From positions 13,330,001 through 13,394,000 of the forward strand of contig OZ176050.1 in assembly GCA_964247055.1 (NCBI GenBank): a stretch of DNA of 64,000 bases, written 5' to 3'. Position numbers and translations under genes: made by a program. Positions within the stretch are counted from its first letter, which is position 1. Each line of letters opens with the position of its first letter. The notes beneath the pieces are model-generated. The model was not told the DNA's origin. It ran no database searches and saw only the letters and a list, made by a program, of their open reading frames with translations. Positions 27,101 to 64,000 of this stretch are shown piece after piece. Source of the DNA: Paragordius varius (lineage: Eukaryota; Animalia; Nematomorpha).

Positions 27101-30100
27101 AAAATTACCTTAATTTTTTAATATTTCAAAACCTAAAAATTTGTTAAAAATTAATATAATACTGAAAAAATAATAAACTATGTATAAAATTATATTTCTG
27201 ATTAATAATCAGTTATATTAGGCCGAAAACACATAATTTATTTTTGTGAATTAAAATTGTTCAGGGGAATAGTTTAAGGGTGAATTTGAATTGTAAATGG
27301 TATATAAATTAATTGTAAAAATTATATATATTGAGTTTAGTTTTTTTTTCAAAGCACCTATGGTTTTTTATCTCTTTGAAATATCGAAGGAGTATATGAC
27401 AGTCAAGATTTCCGCTAAAATGGTTATAAAAAAAATCTTTTATTTCTAATTGAAGATATATAAAACCTATCAGTTTGACCAATGGTTCTCAATATTTTTT
27501 ATGCACGCCTCAAATCTTGCCCCCCTTTCCCTTCTCCTCCCAAAAATGCAAAATTTATTATACTGCTATAAAAATCATAATAAATAAGATCCTTGAATCT
27601 GTAATTCTGGATATATGTTTTCCATATCGGGGGACAAATCTTGATAATTTGCCCCTCATTAACCTTAACAGTGATTACTCTCACTACTAACTTTATGATT
27701 AAAATTAAAAAATATTAAATTATCAACTATAATAAACATTATGTTTAATAACATAAATTTAGAGGCGTTTTTCCAGATTTACGCCTCCCTTTTGGGAACG
27801 ACTGAGTTTGACAATGGCTTCAAAATTTGAATTTTTTTCATTTTTCAATATAATTTATAATAATTGCTATTTAGGTGGAAATACAATGTACCGGGGTTTT
27901 CCTTCACGATTAGAACGAGAAATCAAACAACTTTACTTGGAACGCGTTCTTAAAGGCGACCTATCTCGTCTTGCTGTACGATATTTTTATAATTTTTTTG
28001 TTTTTTTTTTGATAAAAATTGAGTTTATTTATTTTTTAAATATAGTGAACAATCATATATTACACTTATTTACCCTTAAATAAATTATGTATTTTTAAGA
28101 TAAATTACCTATATTTTTTATATTTTCAATAAAAATAAAAATTTGTTTAAAATTAAAAAAAATACTGAAAAAATAATAAACTATGCCATTAAGATATATT
28201 TCATATTAATGATGACTTATATTAGCCCGAAAATTCAATATTTAGGGTGAATTGAATTTTAATTGTTCAAGGGTTTTGAATTTTTAGAGGGTTAATTTGA
28301 ATTGTTTAAGGGTGAATTTGAATTCTTCGAGGGAAAAATTGAGAATGTATTTGAATTGTAAATGGTATATAATACCCAAACAAAACTCATTACTCTATTT
28401 AATGAGTTTTTTGTCCTGAACAACGTTTTTAAATAATTTTTTTTATTCAAAACATTTCCATTTTACGTATAAATCTAAAACCATTTTTGTTTTATTATTA
28501 TTATTATTATTATTACATTACATGTTTTCACTCGTGAGAGCGGTCATGTTATACAACCTGTCTCGCCATAAAACTCTATCTATGGCGTCCTCTGCATTAA
28601 GCTCGTATTCTGCTAGCTCTCTTTTTACTGTATCTATCCATTTTGTTTTAGGCCGCCCACGTCCTCGTTTTCCCTCAACTATATAACCATCTATTATTTT
28701 TGCAATATAATTAGAATCTCTCCTTTCAATGTGCCCGAACCAACGTAGCCTATTTTTTGACATTCTTTCCGCTATTGGTTTAATATCTGTGTTCCCACGA
28801 ATAAATCTATTCTCGATTTTGTCCTTTCTAGTTACCCCACACATCATTCTGAGCATTTTCATTTCAGTCACGTTAAATTGTCTTTCTTCGGATTTTTTGA
28901 CACCCCATGTCTGTGAATTATACATCATTGAGGGCTGGACAACTGAACTGTAAATCTTACCTTTCACTCTAACATCAATATTTCGATCGCATAATACGCT
29001 CGAAATTTTCTTCCAATTTACCCAGCTGCTCTTTATTCTTAAATTAATATCGTCAGTTAACGAACCATCTGCACTTAACATAGCTCCAAGATATTTGCAA
29101 CTTTCTTTACCCTTCAGAACCCAACTATCATCAACTACCATTTCATGTTGTGGACCACCAAAAGTAATAAGTTCGGTTTTTGCTTTGTTTACTTTCAGAC
29201 CATATTGATCCAGCATAACAACCCATCTGTTTACCGTTCGCTTTAACTCAATTAATGAATCAGACAAGATGATTATGTCATCTGCATACATTAAGTACCA
29301 TCTTGAACTCACATTAACAACCTTGGCTACCTCGTCCATACAAATTATAAACAATAAGGGGCTGAGTGATGAGCCTTGGTAGACTTCATGCTTTATTGAA
29401 AAGGGCTCTGATAAACCTTGTGGGGTTTTAATCCTGGAGGTTGTGATTCGTACATTATTTGTAACAACTTAATATAACTTTCTGGCTCCTTTTTACGACG
29501 GAGACTCCACCAAATAGTTTCTCTAGGAATCCTGTCAAACGCCTTCTCTATATCAATCAAAACCCCGTGTAATTCTTTCTTTTTTTCAATGTGTTTTTCA
29601 ATCAACCTCCTAACCGCATGTATAGGATCTACTGTTGACTTTCCTGGCATGAAACCAAATTGATTTCCTTCTATAGATATCATTTTCCTGATTCGCTTTT
29701 CAATTATTTTTTCAAACAATTTCATAGTGTGCGACATAAGTTTTATCCCTCTATAGTTACTACATTCATTTATATCACCTTTTCCTTTAAATAAAGGCAC
29801 AGTTAAACTTTCCTTCCATTCAACCGGGATTTCATACGTTGAAACAACTTTATTAAATACACGCTCCAAAAAATTTAATCCAGAATTTCCAAGCACTTTC
29901 CAACAATTTATATTTATGTCGTCCGATCCTACAGCTTTGTTGTTTGGCATTTCTAACAAATTAGATTCTACTTCCTTTTGTGTAATTGCTTCTATTGGTC
30001 TAGCAGTAGCTTCAACTGTATTTGGCAAAAATATCTCGCCTACCCCTTCATCTAAACTCACAAAGTACTCTTTCCATCTTTTTAATATTTCTACATTTTC

Positions 30101-32087
30101 GCACAGCAAGCTTCCATCTTTTCCTTTTATTGCAGTCGCATAACATGGCAAATCCATCCTGCGTTTATTCCTTTGCTGCGCAACTTTATACACTTTGTTT
30201 AAACCTTGCTTACTATTTAACTCATCATAAAATAAATTCATTTTTTCTTTCTTAACCTGACCGACTAATTTTTTCAATTCCTTATTTAAACTTTTATACT
30301 TATCTCTATCATCATCATTCCTTGTATGTCTCCATTTGTCAAAAGCCTTACCTTTTTCTCGTGACATCAATATTATTCTTTCATCGTAAAGCCAAGCCTC
30401 TCTGTATACTTGAGATTTTCCGCCTTTTAATCCACAAACTAGAGTTCCTGCCTTTTTGATTAACTGACTTACTTTATCCCAATCACCATTTAACCCTCCA
30501 TCCTCGGATAACCGTATTTCTTTTATAAAAGCCTGCCTTTTTTCGGATAATTTCTCCCACTTAATACTTTTTAATCTCTTTGAATAAGAACCACTTTGTT
30601 TAGACTTTTCTTTCACGAAAAATTTACAAATAAGTAAATTATGTTGCGAACTAACCTCTAAGTTTGGCACGACCTTACAATCTACCACAAGCTTCAATAA
30701 ATCTCTTGGAACAAGTATAAAATCTATTTGAGATTTGTTTATGCCGCTCTTAAAAGTTACTAGATGACTCTCTCTTTTTTCGAAAAACGTGTTCGCTATC
30801 GCCAAATTGTGAGATTGTGCAAATCTGAGCAAATTAATTCCTTCCTCGTTTCTTTCTCCATAAGAATGTCCCCCGTGCCATATTTCAAAAGATTCCCTTT
30901 TTGAACCAAGATGACCATTAAAATCCCCACATAAAAACTTGACTCTGAGCTGAGGGAGAGCGACTATTTTTTCATCTAAAGTCTCGTAAAATTGCTCCTT
31001 TTCTTGTTTGGGTAAACCTATTTGCGGGGCATATATACTAAATACCGTTATGACCTCGTTACCTACCAAAATATCTAAATTCATGATTCGGCTGTTATAG
31101 CGTCTAACCTCTTTAACCTGATTGGACAATTTGGGATTAATGATAATTGCCACTCCATTTCGTCCGCCACTTTCACCTGAGTAATATAGTCGATAATTCT
31201 CTTCCAAAGTCCTTGCTCCGTTTCCGCGGTAACGAGTCTCTTGTAATGCCAAAATATCAATATGTTTAACTTTCATTATTCTCACAATATCATTTAACTT
31301 ACTTTTCAATGAACCAACATTTAAACTAGCAAAATACAGGCATCTCGTATTCCTTTTCGTTCTCTTTGTATTATTGGCCACAACACCAAAACCGCGGCTG
31401 GCCAGGCCTGACCGGTTATTACTATACACATCAATATTCATTTGACAGCTTTAAACAAACAAAATAAAATAATAAAATTGAAGTGTCGAACTAATTATGA
31501 CAAATTGATAGATGTTAAAAAAAAAACCTAGGCTATAGGTATAAACGGAAATTATATTTCGCAATAAAAAAAAATTAAAGCAAAAATTATGTATAAAACA
31601 ATATAAATCAAGGGTTATTTTATGTGTCATAGTAAAAAATAAAAATAAATAGTGCTACAATACTTATCCAAGAATACGATCTATATATTTAAGAGAATAT
31701 TAATAGGCAAATTTTAGGAAAAGGCCAACGGTAAGTCCTACGTCCAAAAACAAAATGGGAATAGGTATGTTATAACAAAAATTTAAAGTATAGGATAAGT
31801 GATAAAAGATAGAATAAACTTTGAAGATAAATAGATAAGAATTTAGAATTTTTTTCTTTTGTGTAATGTACGAACTCGCGCGCGTACAAAACAATAAATA
31901 TTTTTGCTTTATTCCAAATTAGAAATTTAAAATCCGAATCGAAGATCCACCCCGAAGAAAACATATGGTGTTTATAGGGGGAGCTGTGCTAGCTGATCTC
32001 ATGAAACACAATGATAGATGGTGGTTAACACGAACAGAGTATGCAGAGATCGGACCAAAATCACTAGATAAATTTGGACTTTCTTAA
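21159..32087 (+). CDS. ACTR2: Actin-related protein 2 (Arp2/3 complex), 397 aa, 9 exons
   Basis: Exons 21159-21200, 21233-21358, 22084-22305, 22604-22676, 23691-23827, 24212-24361, 26818-26995, 27875-27975 and 31923-32087 (1194 nt). Motifs [52 protein letters not shown] and [17 protein letters not shown]. Confidence 0.95.
22687..22957. mobile_element. MITE family B (Tc1/mariner-like, TA|CAGT ends)
   Basis: TACAGTAAAAATTGAAATTATACGGACAAAACGTAAAA pairs with TTTTACGTTTTGTCTGTGTAATTTCAATTTTTACTCTA. Confidence 0.7.
23379..23634. mobile_element. MITE family A, copy 4
   Basis: TACCATCTACG...TGTAAATGGCA. Lies in Arp2 intron 4. Confidence 0.75.
24400..25600 (-). mobile_element. Degenerate 5'-truncated RTE-like LINE with a PHD-like Cys/His finger after the RT core
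   Basis: Minus-strand relic motifs in order: [17 protein letters not shown], (LLY)ANDL, KTKLM, WPCSMC...[38 protein letters not shown] and WAGHIHR. Confidence 0.75.
25629..26200 (+). mobile_element. Inverted partial duplicate of the same PHD-bearing LINE
   Basis: 25629-25800 and 25935-26125 are reverse complements of about 25283-24918. Encodes the relics WPCSLC and [14 protein letters not shown]. Confidence 0.75.
27031..27302. mobile_element. MITE family A, copy 5
   Basis: TACCATTTACAGTTC...TGTAAATGGTA. Lies in Arp2 intron 7. Confidence 0.8.
27480..27804. mobile_element. hAT-type MITE with a perfect 8-bp TSD
   Basis: TIR CAATGGTTCTCAA / TTGGGAACGACTG. TSD AGTTTGAC at 27472-27479 and 27805-27812. 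Confidence 0.8.
28050..28367. mobile_element. MITE family A, copy 6 (left TIR eroded)
   Basis: Body and right TIR (TGTAAATGGTA) are intact. Lies in Arp2 intron 8. Confidence 0.7.
28494..31450 (-). mobile_element. Near full-length RTE-clade LINE (APE endonuclease + RT), antisense in the last Arp2 intron, one frameshift
   Basis: ORF 31441-29393 contains SLNVGSL, LQETR, GDFNGH, SQIDFIL, YRGIKL and [11 protein letters not shown] 29354-28518 contains YADD, KYLG, LRWFGH and [11 protein letters not shown] 1-nt shift near 29445 rejoins them ([14 protein letters not shown]...[10 protein letters not shown]). (TAA)n 3' tail at about 28494-28517. Confidence 0.92.
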
Positions 32088-47411: not shown

Positions 47412-50400
47412 TTATTTATGAAATATATTATAGGGAACGTAACAAGCCGAGGGCGCTATTGAAGTTTCTAACATTCCTGGGATCGCCACCAATTGATTTG
47501 TCTGTATATCCAAACATTCAATTTCTTTAAGTTCGAGATTGCTGAGTGAGCTAACGCCTCCAATTACAAAAATTTTGGAATCTGAATTTTGGATAAATAT
47601 TTTGTAAATGGCATATAAATGGCATATGGGAGCTTTATGTGTGAACTATTATTTTTGGAAACAATAATAAAGCTTAGCTTATATTTATGGATACTACTAT
47701 AAAAATCTATATATTTATAAAAATGGAAAATGCTGGCTTTGGGATCTGATACCGGAAAACCGGTAGACCCATTCAAATCCAAATATCGAAAAAATATAAT
47801 CATTAATGAATGCCCCGACAATAGCTTCGTCTTTTTTTGAAATAGGCCCCCAGTTCGGGCCCACCCCGTATGAAAAACGGTTTTTTTTTGAAAACAGAAG
47901 TCCACAAAAATCGTGTCTTTGAGACAATTTTCCGGAGAACGTGTTGGACCATTCAATTTCAAATATGATTATTGTTTACTTATTTTCGATTGCGCCGAAC
48001 ATAGCCGAGCCACTTTTTTGATTTAGGCCCTCTTTTTACCCGCTCCCCCCGTAAAATGCCACCTTTTTCAAAAAACAAAGTCCACAAAAATAATTTTTTA
48101 AATCTATTTTTCGCCAAAGTAAACAATATATTAGTATGAATATACCGTTTTGGAATTCCTATGATATCATAGCTATTAAATAATGTTCCAAAATAATTCA
48201 CATATATTGTCCCTTTTTTTCAAATAGGGATGCGTAGCAGCACGAGATTTACGCTAGTACTTTATAAAATATTACACGTTGTTTGAATAAATACTTATTA
48301 TTTAACACTTTGATTCAAATTGGGACATCTTAATACCCCAGAATAAATTTAATTTAATTATAAAAATTACTGAAAATGATCCCCATTTAAATTCATGCTT
48401 CTGTCATAAAAATTATATAAATAAACCAAATTTTCTAAATAAAATTTTGTTTTGAAAAAATGTACCATGTCAAACTACTTCGACGCCATTTTTATTTTAC
48501 AAAATTTTTGCAAAATATTGTGTTATATATGATTTAAAATAAAATCAAAGATTATTAAATTGCATCTAACATTGATAGAAATAGAAAAAGTGGTTTATTT
48601 TGTATTATTTTTCAATTTAACCAATGCACACATGTTACGTTGATTAAATTTTTATCTTTAGGTTTACCTTAAAATAATTATTATCAAGTTTTTGAATAAA
48701 TTTTTTTATAGGTTTATTAATGTTATATCAAAATTTGTCATGATTTCAGTTCCTTCTATATTTTTAAAGTATTTAATTTTAAACAGGCCTGAAGTATCCA
48801 ACAACCCCGATTTAAATCGAAGGACTAAAATGAATGTTTTGAAGTGTTAAAATGGGACATATATTATTAAATTGCCCCTAACAAAAAAAGGACAAATAGT
48901 AATGAATAAAAATAAGCTGTCGTACGAAGCTATTATACCTTTTTTGACCAATGTACATTTTAGTTTAGATAAAAGATCTGATCTGATATAAGTTTGAAAA
49001 AATAAACCATAAGTTATCATTCCAAAGCGGTGTCTTGGAATTTTTAAGCTATTAACATAGCTCCATGTATCCGTATCCTCATTGTAAACATCTATGGCTG
49101 GCATGCTCGTAATATTATAGGTATTCTGAGCTGACCCTAAAAATAAAAATAAAATAATTAATTGATTTTTGTTTGAAAGCTTTACACACCATGCTTTTAA
49201 TGCATTTTACTTTTGAAAATATTTATATTTCTCATTGACACGTGTAATTAAATAATATGTTAAACAAATGTTACCATCACTGTTATTAGTAAAAAGGGTC
49301 GCACCACCGCAAATATATAATTTGCCCAAAGCCACTCCGCTCGAAGCATGACATCTGGGAAAGCGTAAATGCTTGCGTTTACACCACCTATTTAATGCAA
49401 CAAAATGTGTATAAATAACGTTATCGAACTATTTTATATCCTGTTTATTCATTAATGAGAAAAAAGTTATAATATTATTTCAACATCTTTTTGCTTTTAG
49501 ATATAGCGTATAGGAAAGAATTGACATAAACTCTTAATTCACTTGCTTGCTTACCAGATGTAGTCACAGATGTTTCTTAGAAGACACCTAATTTTGAAGA
49601 GAAATCATTTATTTTTAAAATATTGTCCATCGCCTTCCACACATTTTGCCCATTTCACACGTAATATATGGAATGCCGTTCAGAAAAACTGATTTTTTTT
49701 GCAGCAAACCATTCGTCAAGCCATTTTTAACGTCTTTTGATAAGTATTCATCTAGTGTGTGCTTATTGGGAAGGCGTAAGTCAGATGGCGTCAGGTTAGG
49801 AGACTACAGCGTATGCTATAGAATTTTCTATTTAAGCGATTATAAGGTGTCATTAAATTAGTATGAGACAGATCAAGTCATGCAGCAAAATTATTTTGCC
49901 ATGTCTTCTCCATTTTGGTCGTTTTTCGATCAACGCATTGTGTAACTAAATCATTTGTTGGTGGAATTGTATATTAACTGTTTCACCGGGCTTCAAAAGT
50001 TCATAATACACATAAATGCTCTGGTCTCACCAGATACAGACGATTTGGATTTGGTGTTGTTGGATCGGCTTGACAAACAGAAACACCCCTTTGGATTTAC
50101 GAAATAAAGCCATTTCCGATAAATCGCCATAAAATGATGCAACAATGATTTTTGAGAGTTACTTTGGGATTTGGAACGTTTATTAAAATTGTTTTGGACA
50201 CATTTACCAAGTTTATTGATCTTTGTCATTGCACGTACCCGTCTACTGGTTGTTTTTTGCAATATATCTAATAGTTCTGCCAATGGCCGTTAAACAGTTA
50301 GGTTATCATCCTTTAACTCTTGTCGCAGTTGTGTTGTCCAGAGAGATGACACTCTTTCACATTAAAATTGCAACTTAACCATAATATGTTTTAATCAATG

Positions 50401-52830
50401 ATGTATACACCATATGTTTCTACCAGCAAACGATGACTTTCAACATCTCATTTCTTCTTATTTAAAAAGGCAATGCAATGTTCTTCAAGCACAAACGACA
50501 AGTTTACTGATAAAAAAACGCTAGTTTTTTGCGGACTCAACGTGTGTGTATTTGTCGTTTGAATGTGAGTGAACAATATGGCGTCAGTTTCAAATCGATT
50601 ATATGCCTACTTTACATGACTTTTTTTCTAAGTTAATCCAGTTATGACTTATGACTACACCTGGTAAAGTGCATATTATATATTTATTTAAATTTTTGAT
50701 GGTAATATAGACTTAATTTTTAACCCTGATATATTGGTGTTGTTTATAACGTTAAAGCTTTCAACCGTATCCACAATAGGATATTTGGAATTATGTTCAA
50801 AACCACCCATAACCCAAATACTCTCATTATATAGGCAAGCAGTTGCAGCTAATCTTGCAGAACTTAAGGAAGACATACGGCTGTACGCATCTATTTTTGT
50901 ATCTAATCTTGTCACTGTACTCAAATGACTATTTGAAATATATAAATAAATATATGTGTATCTGAAACATTTCAAATAAAAACAAATGGATTTAGTCTTA
51001 ACTTGTGTCGCTATGATTTTCTTAACTTTGTAAGCAAATGGCAAAAAAGTAAGGAAATATTTAGTTCAATATGGCAATGTATAACAACCCTTAATTCTTG
51101 TTCAGAAAAATAAAATTGATAAATGATTAGATTTTAAGCCTAAAGGAAATTTAGTCGTAACCATAAAATTTAAACCCTACCAAAGGCTAAATGGATTTAC
51201 ATCATTGATCAATGTATAATGGAATACTTGCTGTAAAAATATCCTGAAAATCATAGAAATTTTTTTTTACACACATTAAGAAGAATTAGTTACACAATTA
51301 TTTAAATCTATCAAAGGGAATATATGAAAATTACGAAGCTAAACCAAATTATAAATAATTTAATACTCTAGGTTTCAATAAATACTTTCCGTCAGCGTCT
51401 TGTCCGCCTAGAATGTATATATCGCTTCCAGAAACGGCCAATGAGTGATAAATACAAGCAATTGGCATATCTTTACCAATAATCCAACGCCCATCCTTTG
51501 TATACTTATAAATTTTGCATGTTGGGATCGGTTTATATTTCCCAGGTTTCAATTTGACTTCGCTATATTCAAATCCACCTATATTATAATACATATGGTA
51601 CTCATATATAAACAGACATTGCAAAATAAATGGTTGGTAATCGATACTAATGCAGTTCACTATCGGTAGAAAATATATTTTTTTCAAATATACCAGGTGT
51701 AGTATATGCCTTTACCGGTTTTTTTTAAAAAATACCAATTTTAATGGGAACTTTATTATTTTATTTCAAAATATTGTCCCTCGGCTTCTAAACATTTTGC
51801 TTATCTCTCAAGTAAATGCATGCCATGCCAGAAGAACTACGATTTGCGGCATCATCTAGCCATTTCCAACCTTTTTTAAATTATTGACGTGCTACTCTGA
51901 GAGCAGTTGTTCCATTCATGCCAGAGGTACAACTAACACCAGGTCAGGAGAGTAGGGCGGATGCGGAAGAATTTCCCATCGAACTGATTTTAAGGTCTCT
52001 TTCCCTGGTTTGTTATATGAGACGGTGATTATCATGTAGCAAAATCATTTTTCCATATCTCCTGGACTATTCAGATAGTTTATTATTCCATGTTCTAAAA
52101 ATTATTTGTGGATGATAGCGTAATAGAGCGGTTTCACGGGGCTTCTAATTACACAAAACTGCTTTAGCACATAGGGCAGCCTTAGATAAACCGGATTGGA
52201 ACATTAAAAGCCACGATTTTGGATTTAAAAAAACATTTATCCTCCCCGGTAAAGATTCGATACAAAATCTCTGGTGACTTAGAAACAGGTTTCACAATTC
52301 ACTTTTCGATTTAACCACGAATTGCGTACAATCCATTTACCAAGTTTATTTGTCTTTCCTTTTCGCAGACGTCTACTGATTGTTTAGTTTTAGCGACATC
52401 AAATACATCTGCCAATAGCCGTAAATTTGTGTTGAGTGATCATTCAATAATTATTGCACTTTATCGTCCACGCATTTTTGTGGCAGAGCGCATCTTTCAC
52501 ATTGATATTACAACTTTTAAACATTGAAACTATGTTTCACACGTTTTAATCATTGAGCATATTCACCAGTGTTTCTACTTAAAAATGATTTACAGTATGG
52601 AATAAGAAATGTGTGTATTAGATGTTTTCCATACATTGACATGATTACTGAATGATAAAAATAAGAAGCTAGTCTTTAGGCGAGCTCAACTTGTTTGTTT
52701 GTAGTTTAATGACCTATGAACAAAATGGGGTGTCTAGATCCGCGTACTTTTCGCTAATGTCTTCTCTTAGTTAAACCGGTAATGATTTATGATTAACCTG
52801 GTATTTATATATAACTTTTACTGGTATTTA

Positions 52831-52871
<41 letters not shown>

Positions 52872-55350
52872 TTTAACAAAATACTAATACAATTCATATT
52901 GCGAAAAAATATTGCCTATAACGTAAAGGGATTCTCCGGCAAACGCAATTTGATGCATGCTACTGCTTCAATTTTCGACCATTTCATATGTCTAAGGTCC
53001 AGGATTTGTAGCAAAGAAGGATTCGATCTTCCTTTACATCCACTTAATGTTACACATATTGGATTATTCGCTATATTAACATCGGATGAAACAGATTTTA
53101 TACTAATATTGTTACTACTTTCCTGCATAAATGAATCTAAATATTGATCCAATTCATCAATAGATTCTAATTCTAATATTTTTGTAGATTTGATGGACAT
53201 TGGGAATTTGTCAAACTATTGGTGTTGAATTAAAAATCATATATTATAAATATATATATATATATATATATTAAACAGGTTAGATATGGTGCTTGGAAGT
53301 TAACTTTATGAAAAGTAAATATAATTCGTCTGTATCGAAAAATGGTAATATATTAAGATAAAAATGGAGGCATACATTATCTATGTTTTAACCTGAAATC
53401 TGACAGACTCCTTGTTAGCCAAATACTTCCTGGGGTCAATAATATGGTTTTTTTGCATGCCTTTTAAAACTTTGGGCGACAGATTTAATTTATGTAAGTT
53501 ACTGACTAATATCCTATTCATTATAAATATTCATTTAATATACTGTTAAATTGACATAAATTTATTAAGACATCCAAAATATATAGGAAATTCTATTAAA
53601 AAATTAGTTTCTGGTATATTTGTATCGGGATAGTGATAAATATATTTAAGAATTCCATGCCTTTATGATAGCATTTTACCGCAATATCTACTCAAAACTT
53701 ATATGAGCATTTGTGTAAAAATTCTGTTTCACCTTTTTTGAAATGAGATTACATATGAGCATAAACCATATTCTATCATAAAAGGTGCATTTTTTAAATA
53801 AAGTTATGAATTTTTGTTAATTATTATGAATTTAAAATCTTAGGAGCAGAACCGATTTTAAATGCCTTCATATTTTCAATATGAAAAGTAAAATATTTCA
53901 ACAACACGGTTCTTGGATCTTAATCGAATTTTAGCTCTTAACATTTGCCTTAATTAATGGAATATATATTTTGATCATTTTTACATGTGTTTCCACTTAA
54001 TTTATAATAAAGAAGCGCAAAAAGGAATTTATGTGGCTAGTATAAAAACGTGCCTCTATATATATATATATATATTTAACTAGTTTATAACACATTTATT
54101 ATAATTTTTTACAACAATGTTAGCTTTTAGAAACCCAAAAATAAAACAACATAGGAATGAGCTTCATATTTTTATAATAATTTTGAAATCGTTTAAATTA
54201 TGGACGAAATAGGTATTTTACTCTTGCCCATGCCATCACGATTTCTAGAAACATATTTAAGATCTCAAATATATAATCAATACAAATATTACCAATTGGC
54301 TGTAAGACGCATATTTTCAGGGATTGGTAAATATTTTTGATTGCTTTCCTGAGAACAATATATTAAATCGTCTGTCTGCTGAAACTGCAATAATCTATTA
54401 TTAGCAGCCAATTCTTTGAAACCATCAGACAAATTTTTATCACTAACAGTTGTTTCACATATAATTCTACTTTCTCTCAGGATATGTTTCATTTTGCACC
54501 AAAACAATAGGATATCATATAGTTCTCGTTCATCCAAACATTCAATTTCATCGCTACAACTTAACGCCAAAACTAAATCATAATCCAATTTAATATATAC
54601 AGATGGATATCTTAAAATACACGATTTTAGTTTACGGACAAGAATGTCTTTAATTGAATGTTGAAGCTTTATAAATCCATGTGAAGTAGTTAATTTCCAA
54701 TATTCCATTAATATTGAATAAATGTAATTCTTTCGTAGCAAATTATTATCTTTGTTAAAATCTGAAAACAGTTGTTTTATAAATTTCTCGGAATTTAGAT
54801 GTTCACTTAAAGGATCCAATAATGTTTTCAATTCAAATGTGATGGCAGTATCAAATAATTTTGGTATTGAAATAAGCTCTATTAAATTTAAATCAATACC
54901 CTTCCCGGTATTTATATGGTAAAAGATGAGTCTCATAATTTGTGGGTCTATCATTAAATGTGTAAAATCTAATTCTTTTACCATTATTGGCGACAAATTT
55001 TTCGATACAAGCAGCCATTCGAAGAACGGACTACTCCGTATTAAGCATTCTTTCTTTACTTCAAATTGACATTGATAAGATTTCACGATTACGATTTCTT
55101 TGGATGATGTTGGAGAAGACTTTTGAAAAGCGTCCATTTTTTCTAAATCTCCAAACGGGGATATTAGGACTTCTGGAGTTTTCGATATTTGGGATTCGTT
55201 TACATCCCTATCTGGGTTTATTAATTCTACATTTTCCTTTAAGATACCGGGGCTGAAAGATCTTAATTCTGTGTATCGTCTCTGCAAATTCCTTAGTATC
55301 AATCTTAGCTCCTCGTCATCATTATCGCTGTTCGATTCATTTATACTCAT
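47412..55350 (-). CDS. BTB-BACK-Kelch (kelch-like) protein, 8 exons, with one unresolved frame break
   Basis: Exons 55350-54293 (BTB/BACK: LIRSSPFFEWLL, IECLDERELYDILLFW), 53513-53393, 53215-52916, 51578-51386, 50928-50725 (donor uncertain), 49387-49275, 49136-49008 and 47581-47412. Kelch motifs LYVIGG, IYILGG, IWVMGG, LYICGG and IFVIGG. Confidence 0.8.
47706..48257 (+). mobile_element. Non-autonomous Helitron-like element, second copy
   Basis: A|TCTATATATTTATAAAAATGG start shares about 400 bp with the copy at 42869. Ends GCGTAGCAGCACGAGATTTACGCTAG|T. Confidence 0.7.
48302..48850. mobile_element. piggyBac-like (TTAA) MITE
   Basis: TTAACACTT ... AAGTGTTAA termini. Body shared with the copies at 6193 and 36036. 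Confidence 0.7.
49554..50664 (-). mobile_element. Degenerate mariner element 1
   Basis: TA|CCAGATGTAGTCA ... TGACTACACCTGG|TA (Mos1-like CCAGGTGTA end). Minus-strand relics SPNLTPSD (about YSPDLAPSD), KWLDEWFAAKK and WQKCVEGDGQYF-like. Confidence 0.8.
51693..52801 (-). mobile_element. Degenerate mariner element 2
   Basis: TA|CCAGGTGTAGT ... TGATTAACCTGG|TA. Minus-strand relics of the mariner C-terminus (KWLDD, EAEGQYF-like). Confidence 0.75.
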
Positions 55351-56435
55351 AATAAATAATGCAAATTAAACAGTCATTTATGCACAAGTAAAAATGATAG
55401 GAATTTAACTGATTGTTTAAATACTTTAAGTATCAAAATTTTCACATTACGTTGGGTAATATTATCATCATAAAAACATTTTTGATCGTAAGTCAATATT
55501 CATAGCATTGAATCGATTTTTAGAATAAGTTAATCGTATTAAGACCGTTTTTGATTTTTTTCATTAATTAATGTATAAGTTAAAAAATTGATTAAAATAT
55601 GTTTTATCTTATGACTTCAATACCTTTTAAGAGTTTCAGCTACACAGAGCTACTATAATATTAGTATCGAGATAATTATCATACCAAATTTAATAATTTT
55701 AAATGCATTGTTCAAAAAATTCCCCAAATACATTTTAAACAAACAGCTGATTTTAACCATATTTACGAATTTCATCGCAACAACATGTGAGCAAAAGCAC
55801 TTTATATTTAACCTTAATATCTTCTTTTAATTTGTTATGTTTTAGGCAATTCAATATCAAAAGATATAATTATTGTGCTAAAAGAGCGGAGAATTTATTT
55901 CACAATTTATCATTGTAAAAATAGTAAATTAGCCTCTAGGACCGGTAACCTCGCCACAAATGGCTTTGCGTGCAGCATTTTCGTCTGATAAAATCCAGTG
56001 GACCGCATCTGAAATAATGAATGGGTAAATATTATACTGGATTTCAAGCATAAGTCTAAATTTACCAGTTCACCAATTTTGGCTTACTGCCAAAAATTAA
56101 AAAGTTGGATTATTCCGATTCGTCTAAGCATTTTCAATTTAAGTGAGAATTTGTTGAATATGGAAGATTTTCTGCTAGATATAAATACATAATATATATA
56201 TATATATATATATATTTCAAAAACAAAATAGCAAATTTATTTTAATTATCTCCAAATAGTACTAAGTAAATATAATTTAAATTTTATAAATTATGTGTAC
56301 TTACAATTTTAAAATTTATATTTAATGTGTTAGTTAATAAGTTAAATTTGATTGTTATAAGATTATTCAGCCTTATTATATAACAACAATCGCAAATTTA
56401 TATACGATATTCTAAAAATTCACAAAAATAAAAAA

Positions 56436-59400
56436 ATGTTTATTAACTCTTCCACTTTGTTTAACAAATCATCCATTCATAAATTTAAGGCAAAACCACC
56501 TATTGAAAACTACTTTCCACTAATTCCTAATAAGTACACGAAATCATTGAAGTTGAAGGATTATACAAATATAGCAACTCAAATATTTAAGGAGGCGACC
56601 CTTAAAGCTAACAGTCATTTGAAAAGACAATCTGTGAAACCATTAGAGTTGAAGGATTACACAAATATTATAGCAAGTCAGATCTTAAAGGACGCTAAAC
56701 TTAAAGCTGATGATCATATGAAAAGTCAGTTACCGAAACCACTAAAGCTGATGGATTATACAAATATCATAGCAACTCAAATATTGAATGAGGCGGCCCT
56801 TAAAGCTGATAATCATTTGAAAAGACAATCTGGTAAACCATTAGAGTTGAAGGATTATATAAATATTATAGCGACTCAAATATTGATGAAGGCTAAACTT
56901 AAAGCTGATAGTAATTTGAAAGGTCAAGCTGCAAAACTACCATTGAAGTTGAATGATTATACAAATATCATAGCAACTCAAATATTGACGGAGGCCAAAT
57001 TTAAAGCTGAAAGTAATTTGAAAAGTCAATCTGCGAAATCAGCATTGAAGTTGAATTATACAAATATCGCAACTCAAATACTAAAAGAGGCCAAACGTAA
57101 GACTGTTAGTTTGACATGCCAATCTGCGAAACCACTAAAGCTAAAGGATTATTTAAATATCATAGCAACCCAAATATTAAAGGATGCCAAACTTAAAGCT
57201 CATAGTCATTTCAAAAGTCGATCCGGCAGAGGTCCAGTGATTGCAAAACCATTGAGGCTGAAGCATTATATAAACATAATCGCAAATCAAATATTAAAAG
57301 AGGCAATGGCTTCTGCCCATATACAAAAGCAAAATAATTTTGATAAAAGTTTGAATATATCTAAATCGAATAATACTTCCGATGATAATTGTGATAGCAC
57401 AATTCTCCTCAACCCCAAATTAAAGCCAAAAAAGAAAGTTAGATGGATAGATGAAATAAAACTCAATGAGAGTCAATTGGAAAACTTGAATGCTTTTCCT
57501 TCATCCCCTTCTCTTTATCAATCTCTCCATAGCAAAGTGCTTTCAAACACACAAAAACAGTATAAAACTCTGAATGGATGTATATTGGAACAAAAATATG
57601 ATGAGTTAAAGGCGGAAATCCTGCAGATATCTGGTAAAATTTAATATTGTTAATTAAAATAAGATTATTATATGCTTAAGTAAAATTTAATTAAATAGTT
57701 ATACTTTATTTATAGAATGTTAATAAATATGCGCACTATTTCACGTAGCATTATTAAGTCAATAAATTAACAGTTTTGAACCGAAACCATTGGTATGTTT
57801 AATAACTTAATTGTTTTTGTTAACTTAACTCAATTGATCTTATATTAGTTACCTTATGAAAATATAATATTATCCTTCTCTCTTACCTTTGTGCATAATA
57901 CTTAAGGTGATCAGATTTTTTGAAGGAAAAAGCGGGACAAATCTGAGGGGGGGGGGTCATTGGTGGGTACAACCAAAAATTTTTATACAAAAAATTTATT
58001 GTAATATTTATTTATTTTTAACACAAATACATTATAACTCTAAAAAAATTTGTACCTTACAGGTTGTTTGTACCTTATTCAATAAATTTACATGTGCACG
58101 AACAAAGGGTGAAATAATATTTTAGAATAAAGACGGAATCATCACAAAGTGCGCTGGGTGATGCAAGATGCGGCGCAAAAAATATTTTTAACAATTTAGC
58201 GAATAATTTTAATCAAAACATTATTGGCAGATACACAACGCTATTCAAACAGCTACTGATTTGTTACCCCTGGATGTGGAAAATATAGATGTTAAAATGC
58301 TTGGATATTGCAGAACTGTTGGTTAACTCTTTTGCCAGCAATTGAAATATTTATAAAAATGTGATCTCCTAGAATCCTAATTTTTATCACAGGACAAAAG
58401 TCAAAATTCCTAATCAAAAAAGGTTAGAAAATAATTTTATACCATTACTTAATCGCAATATCATAAAGCATCCAGAAAAACAAGGCTCATTGAATAGCCA
58501 GAATATAAAAATGTTTTATACAAACAGAAACGATTATTTGGAAGACAAAACGGTGCACAATGACACTTTTTAATGAAGTCTCATTATTATATAAATAAAT
58601 TGAATGAAAGCTTAAATTATAAACAACAGAAAAAAATACGTAGGATAGGTTAAAATAATCATTTTTAAAAAAATTATGTTCCATACAATAATATTTTAAT
58701 TGTAGAATTTGCATTATCTTTACCTGAACCACTGCTATTGAACGCGTTTTTCCACAGTAAATTAAGTAAGGACAAGGAATCAAATTTAAATGTTGAATAA
58801 ATGCCATTTTAATTTGACAAATTATGACTTATACAATATTTTAAGTAATTTTGTTTATATTTTAACATAAAAACTTTAAAGAAAATATTTTATTCTTTGG
58901 TATATTTTTGGTTTAAGTGAATGCGTTTTAGCAGATTATCATCATTTTTTAAAATATTGTAGAAGTCTTCACAAGAATTTGTCAAATTATATTTGACAGA
59001 TAAAACGGCCTTCAAAGTTTCAACATTTACATTTGATTTTTCCGATGTCCACACCTGATTTACTTTGGAAAAAACGCGCTCAGTAGCAGGGTTGGTTCTA
59101 GGTAAAGATAGTGCGAATTCCACAATTTTTAAAATATTATTGTATGTAATATTGTTGGCTTCAAAATGATGAAATATTTCCAACCATTTCTTTTCTACTG
59201 TATATTTTTCTTTTGTCCATAATTTAAGTTTTTCATTATTAATATATCTTTTAACTAAAGATACTTCAGAAAAAAGATCATTTTCTGAAAGATCAATTTT
59301 TAAGAATTTTTGGGACCAGATATAATCAAATGATTTTTGAACATCGCACCAATTAAATTCTGATTTTAATGTTATCCAATGAAAATGATAAAGTTCATTG

Positions 59401-62039
59401 AGCGTCGTCCAGTCTTCCAAATAATCTTTACAGTTTGTATAAAACATTTTTATATGGTACAGGATATCTTGGCGATTTATTAAGCCTTGTTTTTCTAAAT
59501 TATTTATTGTATTGCGGATGGTTAATGGAATAAAATTATTTTCTAACCGTTCTTGACATTGGAATTTTAGGTTACTAACTTCATTGGCTACTTCTGCCGA
59601 AATTTTGTCACCTTCAATAAATTTAATAACATTTTGAAAGAGAGAAGCTTGATTATGTAAGAATTTTAACCATATTTTTGAAGAATCACTTTCAAAAAAA
59701 ATTTTTAAAGTTGTAGGACATTTGTCCTGTGATAAAAAAAAAGGTTTTAAAGGATCATACATTTTTAAAATTCCTTCGATAGCTGGCATAAAAGCTAACC
59801 AACGAGTTTTACTATATCCAAGCATTTTTTGATATTGAACTTCTGCATTTTCACAGATTCTTTAAGCGTTTCAACACGTACCGTGTATATATAAAAATAG
59901 GAATATATTTTAACAACTACATTTTCCACATCTAAGGGTAACAAATCTGCAGCTGTTTGAATAGCGTTGTGTATTATATGCGTTGCACACCCTACGCCAA
60001 TAATGTTTTGATTAAGATTATCTGTTAATTTATGAAAAATATTTTTTGTTCCTCTCCTTGCTTTTCCACCAAAGTTCGTATTGGTGTTGTCAGCGCAATA
60101 TGCGATAATTTTGTCTTTTAAATTATTTTTTTGTAGAATATGCATTATTGAAGTAAATATTATTTCAGAATTTTTACCGGGTAGGGAAATTAAATCTAAA
60201 AATTTAATTTTTACTCCGGTTTCTGAATCAAAATATCTTATCAAAGTAGGAAATAATTTTGTTTCATGGTGATTTGAAGCATCAGAGTATAGGGAAAAGA
60301 AATTAATTTTTAGCAAATCTTTTTGTATTTCAGAAAAAGCATGTGGCGAAAAAACATTGCATACAATGGCTTCAGCCTTTGTACGGGCACATGTAAATTT
60401 TTTATTGAATAACGTGCGAATAACCTGTGAGGTACAATCCATTGAACGAAATGAATGGCAATGATTTAAGGCGTGAAAGGAAAACAGGCCCTCAGCAAGT
60501 GCTAAATTCTTTTCTTCCTCTCCAAAAGCGGTTTTTCGAAAAAAATCGCTCATCTTGTGAGATGATGCCGTTATAATTAAACATTTTTGTTGTTTCTGTG
60601 TATCAATATGCTTTGTAATGTCATGTTTGCCGCCATGTGCCAGCGTGAATTCCCCATCGCATATAAGACATTTAATTATTCATTCTTCGTTTTTTTAATG
60701 AAAGGAAAATCTTTCATTCATTCATCATTGAATTTACAGCCTCTTTTTGTGTTCATATTTATAAACTAAATATTAGTATAATAATTATATTACCTTAATT
60801 TCTGGAAAAAGCGTGTAAGGTATTGATTTGTAGTATTAATTTAAATTTTTTATAATGTTGGCAAGTATTAAAACTAAATATTAGTATAATAAATGTTATA
60901 TTACCTTAATTTCTGGAAAAAGCGTGTAAGGTATCGATTTATGGTATCAATTTGGCTTTTTGATATTAATGACAGTAGTAGCAGGAAGGAAAGTGTATAA
61001 TCATATGATATAAATTGGAAAAAAATAAATATTTTTAATTTAAAAATAAAAAATTTTAATTTAAAATAAAAAAAATTTATTTGTATTAAAAAAAATTTTT
61101 TTTTATATAATCATGAAAAAGCGGGACATCTTATAAACGTAGCGGGAGGCGGGACAAAGTGTGAAAAAGCGGGACGTCTGGTCACCTTAATAATACTCCT
61201 TTGTCCTTGTTACGCTAAAAATGTATATCTTGGTTGTGAATGTTTTCACCTAAATACTGTAATATTGAACCTTATGCAAATATGCAACCTCGCCCTAAAA
61301 CTAAATATAATGGAATATAATTTTTTATAAAAGAATAAATTCTTTTTTTCGCTTATTAAAACCATCAAAAATCATAATATAGCCCTTAGATTTGGACAAG
61401 AACCGGGTTCTATGAGTGGTTTTCCGTTTTAGTGGTAGTAGATTGCCACATTTTTTAAGCTTTATAAAGATTGAACTGTAATTATTTAAATTTATTTTAG
61501 AAAATGAAATAATTCCTCAAGCATCAGCCAGAAAATACAAAGTGACGAAACAAATAGTCGAAAATGTAGATTTGAGAGATAAACTGGTGAGACTATCAGA
61601 TGATAACCAAAACAGGAAAACATTCAAGACTTATCCAAAAAGTATCTTACGTAACAGTCAAGACCCGTTAAACAAACGCACTTTTTCGAATGATAAAAAT
61701 ATGGATATGTATAAAAAGCAACACTTAATACCAACATATACAGATAACAATTTAAATGATAACTTTGTCCAATTAATGAATGAATTAAAGGTGGAATCAA
61801 AACCTCAAATTTTAAACCATGATATTAAGGAAACCTTTAATAATGAAAATTTCAATATAAAATGGACTCAACAGGATATCATAAATCAATATCTGGCTTA
61901 TTTATCTGCCTTTGGAAAAGATACCGTATCCAATAATCATTCCACTGTAATGAACCTTAAAGAAAGCGAAAAGAATAATCAATTCTGTTTTGGTAGCGGC
62001 GGTGGGATAACAGTTGTTAGCCTTGATGATGAATTATAG
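56436..62039 (+). CDS. Two-exon tandem-repeat protein (about 579 aa), putative PKA/PP1 scaffold (AKAP-like)
   Basis: Exon 1 is 56436-57633, with a phase-1 donor (G|GTAAAA). Exon 2 is 61501-62039 (TTTTAG|AA AAT GAA, phase 1, in frame with ORF 61542-62039). Eight repeats of about 33 aa; KKVRW and KSILR motifs. The two ORFs are clear; the splice join is inferred. Confidence 0.7.
56546..57312 (+). repeat. Coding tandem repeat, 8 units of about 93-117 bp
   Basis: Consensus L(K/E)LKDYTNIIATQILKEAKLKA..HLK.QS.KP. Units start at about 56546, 56643, 56742, 56841, 56943, 57045, 57135 and 57252. Confidence 0.92.
57903..61189 (-). mobile_element. Complete hAT-superfamily transposon, copy 2 (3287 bp)
   Basis: TIR TAAGGTGATCAGA / TCTGGTCACCTTA. 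Perfect 8-bp TSD ATAATACT at 57895-57902 and 61190-61197. GCGGGAC subterminal repeats. Confidence 0.93.
58890..60765 (-). pseudogene. hAT transposase with few lesions (BED-like finger, DDE core, C-terminal LSLP...TERVFS dimerisation-type motif)
   Basis: ORFs 60553-59795 and 59825-58890 are separated by a 1-nt deletion (AAAGAATCTG versus AAAGAATTCTG in copy 1). The N-terminal CLICDGEF...KHDITKH region at about 60600-60765 contains stops. Confidence 0.85.
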
Positions 62040-62599
62040 AGTTGATGATTGAAAATTGTAAAATATAAAAACAAAAATAAATAATAAAAATATATTTTAT
62101 TTTTGACTTTGTATATGTAGGGATATTTTATTCCAAAAAATAATATAAGTTTAAGGCTGAACTATTATTCCATTGTTTACTAATGAAAATGACCCGTTGA
62201 TTGCGATATTTGTGCCGAGTAAGTATTTTAAGTGAATATTTAATCCAAATTATAATGATTAATCCGTGTTTGTAATATTGACCTATAGCGTTGTGCTTAT
62301 ACTTGTTTTTCTAAATAGCCGAAGTCAATTCTCTACACCAGGGGCGACATTTTAACATGTAAACTTAAAATATTTTATTTTTATATTTGGTCCATTATTT
62401 ATATTGGTAAATCCATATTTTTCATTATGTTGATTTTGTAAACCAGAGTGCGTTACTAACAATGAAGATTGAACATAATTTTATAAGGTGTGACTTTTTT
62501 TGGTTAAAAACAGGTGATAACCACTGATTGGGTCTATATAGTAGCCATGATGCTTAAACTATAGTAAATTTGGCCTTTCTGGATAACCCATAATATCTA

Positions 62600-64000
62600 A
62601 ATGTTATTGTTATTATTGTAGCAAAGATCGTTGTCGATTTATTGCTTTTTCGAAGGTATATTTTCTCCAGTTTATTCGATTGTAAGTGAGTGATGTTAAC
62701 TGTTGTAAAGAGAGATTGGTTTTTTTGGTTAGGTTTTCGATCCAGCGCTATCTTGCAGCGTCCACGTTTCCTGGATCCTTCAACCTTGCCTGTCATTAGT
62801 TGGAATTCCAAGTCATTAGCTCTGGTAATGTGACCAAAGTATGATAATTTCATTTTGAGGCACATGCCAATCAAGTGTATCTCGGGGTTTATTTTGTCAA
62901 GGATTACAGTGTTTTTTATTTTGTCTTTCCAAGTGATTCGAAGTATCTTCCGCCAGCACCAGTTTTCGAAGGCGTTTATGTATTTTTCGTCTACCTTTTT
63001 TATTGTCCAGCTTTCTGATGCATATATCATGCTAGGAAATATTAGGGCTTTAACTAAACGGATTTTTGTTTTAAGTTTGATGTCGTGTGATGACCATAGT
63101 TTATTATATTTTATCATTTTTGTCTTAGCAATTTCTATTCTTCTTTTGATGTCTGGGGTGCTTATGTTTGTTGTATTTATAAGACCTCCTAGGTAAGTGT
63201 ATTGGGTCACTACTTCTATTTGTTGGTTGTGAAAAGATAAGTTGTTATAGTGGTTATGAGCGTTTATAATCATGATTTTAGTTTTTTTAAAGTTGATCGT
63301 CAATCCAAATTTTTGACATTCGTTTGAGAATTCAGTTAGGAGTTTTTTCAGGTTGTCCACTGAGTTTGACAGCAGTATAGTGTCATCAGCATAGTGAAGT
63401 GATGATATAATATTGCCGGCAATGCTTATACCATTAGTTTTATCTATGTTTCGTAATACGCTTTCTATGCAGACATTAAAAAGAGTGGGTGAAAGGACAC
63501 ATCCTTGTCTTAAACCATTGTTCATTTGTACACAATTACTTGTGCCATGTGTGATTTTTATGTTTAGTGATGAATTGGAATAGAGGGATTTAATGATGTT
63601 TAAAATGTGATCTGAAACTCCCATCTGAGATAGTGCCTTCCACAGCGTCTCGTGTTTCACGTGTCGAAGGCTTTTGTAAAATCAATGAAGCAGATGTGGG
63701 TTTCTTTCTGTAATTCAATTTGTTTTTCGAATATCCAACGTAGATTGCTGATCATTTCCCTGCATCCGCGATTGGATCTAAATCCCGCTTGGGTATTAGA
63801 AAGTTCGGCTTCAATTATGCCTTGAATACGCCTATGAATTATTTTGAGGAAAACTTTTGATGCTTGATTTAGCGCTATAGTTCTATAGTTGTTAAATGAT
63901 TCGCCTTTTTTCAAGATGGGGATGAGTATTGATTTGCACCAGTCTTGAGGGAATGAGGCGTGAAATATCTTTTGGAATAAGTCAGTTAAGATATGAATTG
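62600..64000 (-). mobile_element. BovB-like RTE LINE, RT region (continues beyond the window), frameshifted
   Basis: NYRTIAL, QAGFRSNRG, FIDFTKAFD, GLRQGCVLSPTLF, YADD, YTYLG, LSYFGHI and GKVEGSRKRGR. Frameshifts near 63660 and 62720; TAA/CAA-rich tail. Confidence 0.9.

Follow-up and report, generated by a model that had tools for sequence, protein, structure and literature searches.

Comparison with described anchoring proteins

The A-kinase anchoring proteins (AKAPs) for PKA, the cAMP-dependent protein kinase, evolved many times through the gain of one short helix, and to our knowledge each carries one to a few such helices. The gene described here, located at positions 56436-62039 (+) of a 64,000-nucleotide stretch of the genome of the hairworm Paragordius varius (the window; contig OZ176050.1, positions 13,330,001 to 13,394,000), is predicted to encode a protein with eight AKAP-like helices in tandem, followed by two docking motifs for protein phosphatase 1 (PP1). 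Among described systems, AKAP220 and SKIP form a unique class that sequesters multiple PKA holoenzymes (PMC12083921), and AKAP220 binds PP1 through a KVxF motif (PMC4516873). Like the gene family described here, AKAP220 (AKAP11) and SKIP (SPHKAP) have more than one PKA-anchoring helix per chain; their helices are few, non-identical, far apart and possess the FA motif, whereas here 8 to 22 homologous helices follow each other in tandem at a spacing of 32-42 amino acids (aa), mostly without the Ala, and no sequence homology was detected between the two groups. D-AKAP1/AKAP149 and yotiao (AKAP9) combine a PKA helix with an RVxF-type PP1 site in one scaffold (PMC4516873), as is predicted here, but they have defined targeting regions and no described tandem helix array, while the hairworm protein has no recognisable targeting domain.

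From the motifs, the selection acting on them and the candidate partners, all observed in the genome, we infer binding, stoichiometry, tissue and role: the gene product is probably (at about 0.6) a multivalent anchor of PKA regulatory (R) subunits as well as a PP1 regulator. The odds seem about even for the wider proposal that a hairworm-specific family builds PKA-anchoring polymers, which would have 8-22 tandem R-subunit docking helices per chain, a copy number changed via repeat expansion and two forms (one with a PP1 arm, one with long arrays lacking it), and would serve as a multivalent PKA store or scaffold. If binding holds, the family would work like AKAP220, SKIP or D-AKAP1 without homology to any named AKAP, and anchoring valency would have been amplified through tandem duplication into a natural chain of 8-22 helices; no literature on a tandem array of this size was found in the collection consulted, which is incomplete. 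RI-alpha condensates reportedly dissolve when anchoring is monovalent (bioRxiv 2023.12.10.570836), and such a chain would be a ready reagent for studying the effect of valency on PKA clustering. For Nematomorpha, parasites that have been little studied, the family is also a candidate for a signalling innovation confined to the lineage.

The eight tandem repeats

The open reading frame (ORF) at 56436-57644 (+), of 402 aa, contains a tandem array with a 99-nt unit (Tandem Repeats Finder score 674). The initial annotation had counted eight repeats of about 33 aa; the count stands, with successive periods of 33, 33, 33, 34, 32, 32 and 39 aa, and the full helical register is kept in only six of them. 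The intact helices, all on the (+) strand, are those of repeats 2 (56649-56702), 3 (56748-56801), 4 (56847-56900), 5 (56949-57002), 7 (57141-57194) and 8 (57258-57311), while repeats 1 (56550-56603, +) and 6 (57045-57098, +) each lack one residue inside the helix, which breaks the register. In each repeat unit, a linker of variable length would carry a short helix whose positions 1-2, 5-6 and 9-10 are hydrophobic pairs, position 13 also being hydrophobic. This loose pattern is present in six of the eight window repeats and in 90 of 118 family repeats, as against 1.7e-4 per control window.

Judged from substitution patterns, the helix cores are under purifying selection while the linkers vary. 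For the six intact window repeats, a small sample, the ratio of nonsynonymous to synonymous change (dN/dS) equals 0.06 for the hydrophobic face, 0.07 for the polar helix positions, 0.3 for the N-terminal flank and 1.75 for the C-terminal linker, the filter applied having demanded Asn and Ile/Met at two columns, which are biased as a result. Across the family the clades are out of register in the C-terminal linker, and the value obtained there was not used.

The behaviour of the linkers bears on another reading of the array, namely that the repeats, rather than offering free docking helices, pack together or polymerise into a solenoid of helices or a structural fibre. Folded repeat proteins typically show the high identity between units and the conserved polar positions seen here, and the helices in the AlphaFold models (22-26 residues) exceed the AKAP core (14-18 residues) in length. 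However, linker length varies (the period is 32-42 aa across the family) and linker sequence drifts (dN/dS >1). Each repeat has a single helix, moreover, and AlphaFold proposed no confident packing, either for exon 1, modelled as separate helices (pLDDT 34, pTM 0.19), or for three repeats with 51 alignment rows (pLDDT 56, pTM 0.27). A Foldseek search with the latter, a low-confidence model, returned no match. The models lend weak support to helices on a string, and a solenoid or fibre appears improbable.

Two KRQS sites that fit the PKA consensus, at aa 63 and 129 of the ORF, fall in the linkers that follow repeats 1 and 3 and are absent from the two paralogues checked.

Resemblance to PKA-anchoring helices

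RIAD (RI anchoring disruptor), whose sequence was confirmed from PMC4526808, is an engineered peptide and not a gene family, and the close likeness of natural repeats to it is notable in itself. The repeats of the family share with it 7-10 of 18 residues in register, the aromatic residue at position 1 and the same hydrophobic pairs; they differ in mostly having Thr, Val, Ile or Leu where RIAD has Ala at position 2, and in a hydrophobic residue at position 4. The nine of 18 identities previously given for the repeat consensus were reproduced against the published peptide. Single window repeats have 7-9 (eight in repeat 2 and nine in repeat 8, the best), and the smAKAP helix shares five of 14 residues with repeat 2. 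Scored against RIAD with a BLOSUM matrix, the intact window repeats reach 30-44, the maximum again belonging to repeat 8, and the family median is 39. None of 2000 shuffles of the ORF attained 44 (maximum 37), and shuffles preserving both composition and the hydrophobic/polar pattern gave P values of 0.00015-0.007 for the six intact repeats. Among 390,266 windows from real proteins, all of them bacterial, the maximum was 33 and none reached 34; the extrapolated tail per window is ~1e-7 at a score of 44, ~5e-7 at 39 and ~3e-6 at 34, and AT-rich genome controls were similar.

Because RIAD had prompted the AKAP idea, a profile was also made without it, from smAKAP, the D-AKAP2-derived AKB-RII, Ht31 and AKAP-is. 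On this profile the intact repeats correspond to null fractions of 5e-6 to 6e-4 in control windows (RIAD itself, 7e-6), repeat 8 scores as high as RIAD, and the deleted repeats 1 and 6 fall to 2e-3 and 6e-3; the best off-register window scores 6.5, versus 8.8-16.2. The match to the natural smAKAP helix has a null fraction of 1e-4 to 1e-3. The resemblance to AKAP helices noted initially thus survives composition, pattern, real-protein and leave-RIAD-out controls, in a genome that has a conserved RI docking domain.

Besides the bacterial origin of the control proteins and the biased columns of the dN/dS filter, several observations weigh against an anchoring function. The FA/YA dipeptide at helix positions 1-2 is the motif of type-I (RI-selective) AKAPs (PMC12083921); ~90% of the family repeats have an aromatic residue at position 1, but the Ala at position 2 occurs in none of the eight window repeats and in ~10% of family repeats, such as one at C1:9.639 Mb, and the strict type-I pattern in three of 118, so that the RI-type selectivity initially proposed is not borne out. 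The hydrophobic moment of the intact repeats (0.20-0.41, versus 0.51 for RIAD) indicates modest amphipathicity, and conservation of the polar residues of the helix (Asn, Gln, Lys) equals that of the hydrophobic face, which another partner could explain. All repeats descend from one unit and the match therefore counts as one observation, while ~0.5-3 chance matches of this strength are expected per proteome; one motif match is not significant proteome-wide. In Pfam no AKAP model matched and in the PDB no peptide matched, both searches giving chance matches only, and two family members with long arrays have lost both PP1 motifs (see below). No homology to named AKAP families (AKAP3/4/11/SPHKAP, smAKAP, AKAP7, AKAP28 etc.) was found in Pfam, the PDB or 1.84 billion proteins (E<=0.001). 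The helices of sperm AKAP3 and AKAP4 presumably start with Tyr-x-Asn, which we take as a lead only. The AKAP reading gains weight from two facts: the match falls on the repeat core that is under selection, and two PP1 motifs lie next to it.

Some of these points would also suit a PP1-interacting protein whose repeats bind a partner other than PKA-R (Dpy-30, which has the same dimerization/docking (D/D) fold, an unrelated helix groove or a membrane), the AKAP likeness being convergence on a pattern of two hydrophobic and two polar residues. The Ala of the FA motif is missing, the Asn, which is invariant, and the conserved Gln/Lys point to specific polar contacts, the single motif match lacks proteome-wide significance, and the Dpy-30 domain, for which one gene is present, binds helices of the same pattern (PMC3494852). 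Convergence on a pattern is, however, at odds with the pattern-preserving shuffles, in which residue identities beyond the pattern resemble RIAD, and with the persistence of the match against natural smAKAP; the pairing of helix and PP1 motif is moreover a known AKAP arrangement (PMC4516873). We regard a partner other than PKA-R as rather unlikely and PKA-R anchoring as the preferred interpretation.

Docking motifs for PP1

Both PP1 docking motifs reported initially are present, KKKVRW at 57429-57446 and KSILR at 61638-61652, the latter in frame on the predicted splice. Paralogue comparison delimits an RVxF segment, KKVRW plus IDEI, at 57432-57458 (+) and a SILK segment, KSILR(N), at 61638-61655 (+). 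They fit the consensus of each motif, (K/R)x(V/I)x(F/W) and (S/G)IL(K/R), the chance rates per 580 aa being 0.007 for a strict RVxF and 0.05 for a strict SILK. Six of the seven paralogues compared have KKVRWIDEI unaltered, and the seventh departs from it by one change; KSILRN is shared by all six paralogues that retain SILK, with three synonymous changes relative to the window copy, between flanks in which 38-62% of residues differ. Expressed as proportions of nonsynonymous (pN) and synonymous (pS) differences, the RVxF segment has a pN of 0-0.04 versus 0.27-0.31 around it, and SILK has a pN of 0 and a pS of 0.9; the exon-1 tail is ~50% identical to its paralogues, with a dN/dS of 0.36-0.56. 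The compared paralogues are one clade and provide about one independent comparison per motif (P roughly 0.002-0.03 for RVxF and 0.016 for SILK). With zero or one amino acid change amid ~50% divergence, both motifs are well supported, and PP1 binding is predicted from them. No confident AlphaFold fold was obtained for the RVxF region, and its flank is presumably like that of inhibitor-3, a likeness used as a lead only.

The two motifs are 114 aa apart in the window copy and 131-132 aa apart in paralogues. The order RVxF then SILK is also found in budding-yeast Rif1 (positions 114 and 146; PMC3937515), which differs in its shorter spacing; the hairworm protein has no HEAT domain and no homology to Rif1.

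Gene structure and coding state

The coding part of exon 1 (56436-57633, +), defined from the ORF, comprises a conserved ATG, a short N-terminus, the eight repeats, the RVxF region and a phase-1 donor (CTG/GTAA), the ATG and donor being kept in paralogues. The phase-matched splice 57633->61501 proposed initially joins a GT donor to an AG acceptor in phase, giving a frame of 579 codons with one terminal stop, and exon 2 (61501-62039, +) is open for 178 codons to a TAG. In paralogues the exon-2 homologue has the same phase and begins 119-128 nt after the same CTG/GTA donor, or 920-928 nt in two cases; this colinearity supports the splice well, the gene structure being predicted from the paralogues. 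The window intron (57634-61500, +, delimited by paralogue comparison) is long (3867 nt) because it is inflated by a hAT insertion, without which, and without one target duplication, it measures 572 nt. In three paralogues (L017, L019, L020) exon 2 is interrupted by a further GT-AG intron, 74-76 nt long; its predicted splicing puts SILR in frame 131-132 aa past RVxF, and the proteins end 22 residues further. SILK is thus in frame, on predicted splicing, in these paralogues and in the window copy, where an in-frame deletion removed the second intron and left the frame open to 62039. Intact family members with the PP1 arm have one or two introns.

The insertion raises the question of a decaying or silent copy, in which hAT would block splicing or end the transcript early (leaving a 402-aa product without SILK), or of a family propagated by duplication while serving no function. 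Frameshifts, stops and lost splice sites disrupt many loci of the family, a 3.3-kb transposon sits within the intron, and two repeats have deletions. In the window copy, however, neither exon is interrupted (399 and 178 open codons, in DNA of ~71% AT), all indels preserve the frame, and the splice sites are intact and conserved; with the dN/dS of the exon-1 tail and the nearly invariant motif segments, this makes a silent or functionless copy very improbable.

The N-terminus of the protein is short and basic, and a Pfam search and inspection gave no evident domain, transmembrane segment or signal peptide; a reading as secreted effector was dropped, the N-terminus being without signal peptide. 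Upstream of the ATG, the family alignment delimits a conserved non-coding 5' region (56340-56435, +), either promoter or 5' untranslated region (UTR). It includes an inverted pair, GATTGTT/AACAATC, about 30 nt apart (56350-56391) and kept in nearly all aligned family members, which may be a hairpin in the 5' UTR or a pair of sites for transcription factors.

Candidate partners and proposed mechanism

The genome possesses an RI gene (C8:3.676 Mb) whose docking domain matches mammalian RI-alpha at E 1e-16 and which includes a pseudosubstrate site and cAMP-binding cassettes, in addition to two RII-like genes, one Dpy-30 gene and four PP1 catalytic genes. A search of the genome for RIIa domains found only three genes, all PKA-R-like, besides Dpy-30, such short-domain searches giving lower bounds. 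Ropporin/SP17-type D/D partners, which the initial annotation had also envisaged, were set aside as unlikely, no such gene having appeared in this search. Cilia genes have been lost in Nematomorpha, and a genome search in which IFT57 was not found fits this loss. RSP3 resembles the family in having several D/D-type helices in one scaffold, which bind RIIa and Dpy-30 domains of non-PKA proteins (PMC3494852), but it is axonemal and has two helices, whereas here the searches run gave neither IFT57 nor a non-PKA RIIa-domain gene.

We propose a lineage-specific, largely unfolded scaffold in which each helix would occupy the groove formed by the D/D dimer of a PKA regulatory subunit, type I being the most plausible and both types possible, and in which tandem duplication would have multiplied the docking site eightfold here and at most ~22-fold in paralogues. 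Single sites would probably be sub-optimal or weak, since the position-2 Ala is replaced by Thr, Val, Ile or Leu and the hydrophobic moment is below that of RIAD. Large holoenzymes would crowd at a spacing of 33 aa, which makes eight saturated sites less likely than a role in avidity or storage; the array would then act via avidity or as a local PKA store. The C-terminal part would hold PP1 by RVxF and SILK, placing phosphatase beside kinase. A germline site of expression would suit an orphan family that duplicates fast.

One RII-like gene (L126:2477-2638; C3 ~9.131 Mb) has a degenerate cAMP phosphate-binding cassette in which the Arg of P-R-x-A is missing, the only such cassette picked up in 10 kb, and possibly encodes a cAMP-insensitive R subunit. 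One of the PP1 catalytic genes (L129:843-1961, -; C2 ~8.878 Mb) is divergent, intronless and has an N-terminal insertion, the other three containing introns, and looks like a retrogene.

Gene family and orphan status

Searching the whole assembly (110.6 Mb, 44 contigs) revealed 16 family loci on five chromosomes with 135 repeat matches and up to 22 repeats per open frame; the eight-helix array, initially described as a single gene, is real and is one member of this family. In most copies the repeats are followed by the PP1 motifs. One clade (C2-C5) combines these motifs with ~10 repeats, each of 35-38 aa. The longest arrays belong to a near-identical inverted pair at C1:9.58-9.60 Mb (L023/L024, 9.586-9.598 Mb), where the 42-aa repeats number 22 and 14 in frame and both PP1 motifs have been lost; the window gene groups with this pair by its N-terminus, yet retains the PP1 arm. 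The repeats of the pair have one Cys each and an Arg/Ser-rich linker, and the two loci have in common a frame-shifting deletion of 7 nt in the last repeat.

Word searches with the ORF, the family alignment and a three-repeat alignment recovered no relative, a full HMMER scan of 1.84 billion representatives gave no protein at E<=0.001, exact look-ups were empty, and neither the repeats nor exon 2 had a match in the ESM Atlas. The exons were searched separately, the joined frame being only translated. There are no relatives outside the P. varius genome in the collections searched, from which other hairworm proteomes may be absent. The mitochondrial contig has long zero-loop palindromes, with arms of 131 and 97 nt; long mitochondrial palindromes are a hallmark of Nematomorpha (PMC6649704).

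Neighbouring features of the window

The hAT DNA transposon within the intron (57903-61189, -) possesses terminal inverted repeats and a perfect 8-bp target duplication, ATAATACT, at 57895-57902 and 61190-61197, and its transposase is spread over two broken frames. It belongs to a high-copy family, its left end having hundreds of candidate copies across the genome. Within it, at 58050-58800, parts of the transposase gene recur as degenerate inverted copies (arms <=93 nt, 71-91% complementary), and a partial second copy of the same transposase family is located at 1957-2961. Upstream of the repeat gene, head to head with it across a gap of ~1.1 kb, lies a BTB-Kelch-type gene (49993-55350, -). 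Two broken non-LTR retroelements encoding reverse transcriptase are found at 28518-31441 and 62554-63914 (-), the first with an endonuclease-like N-terminus.

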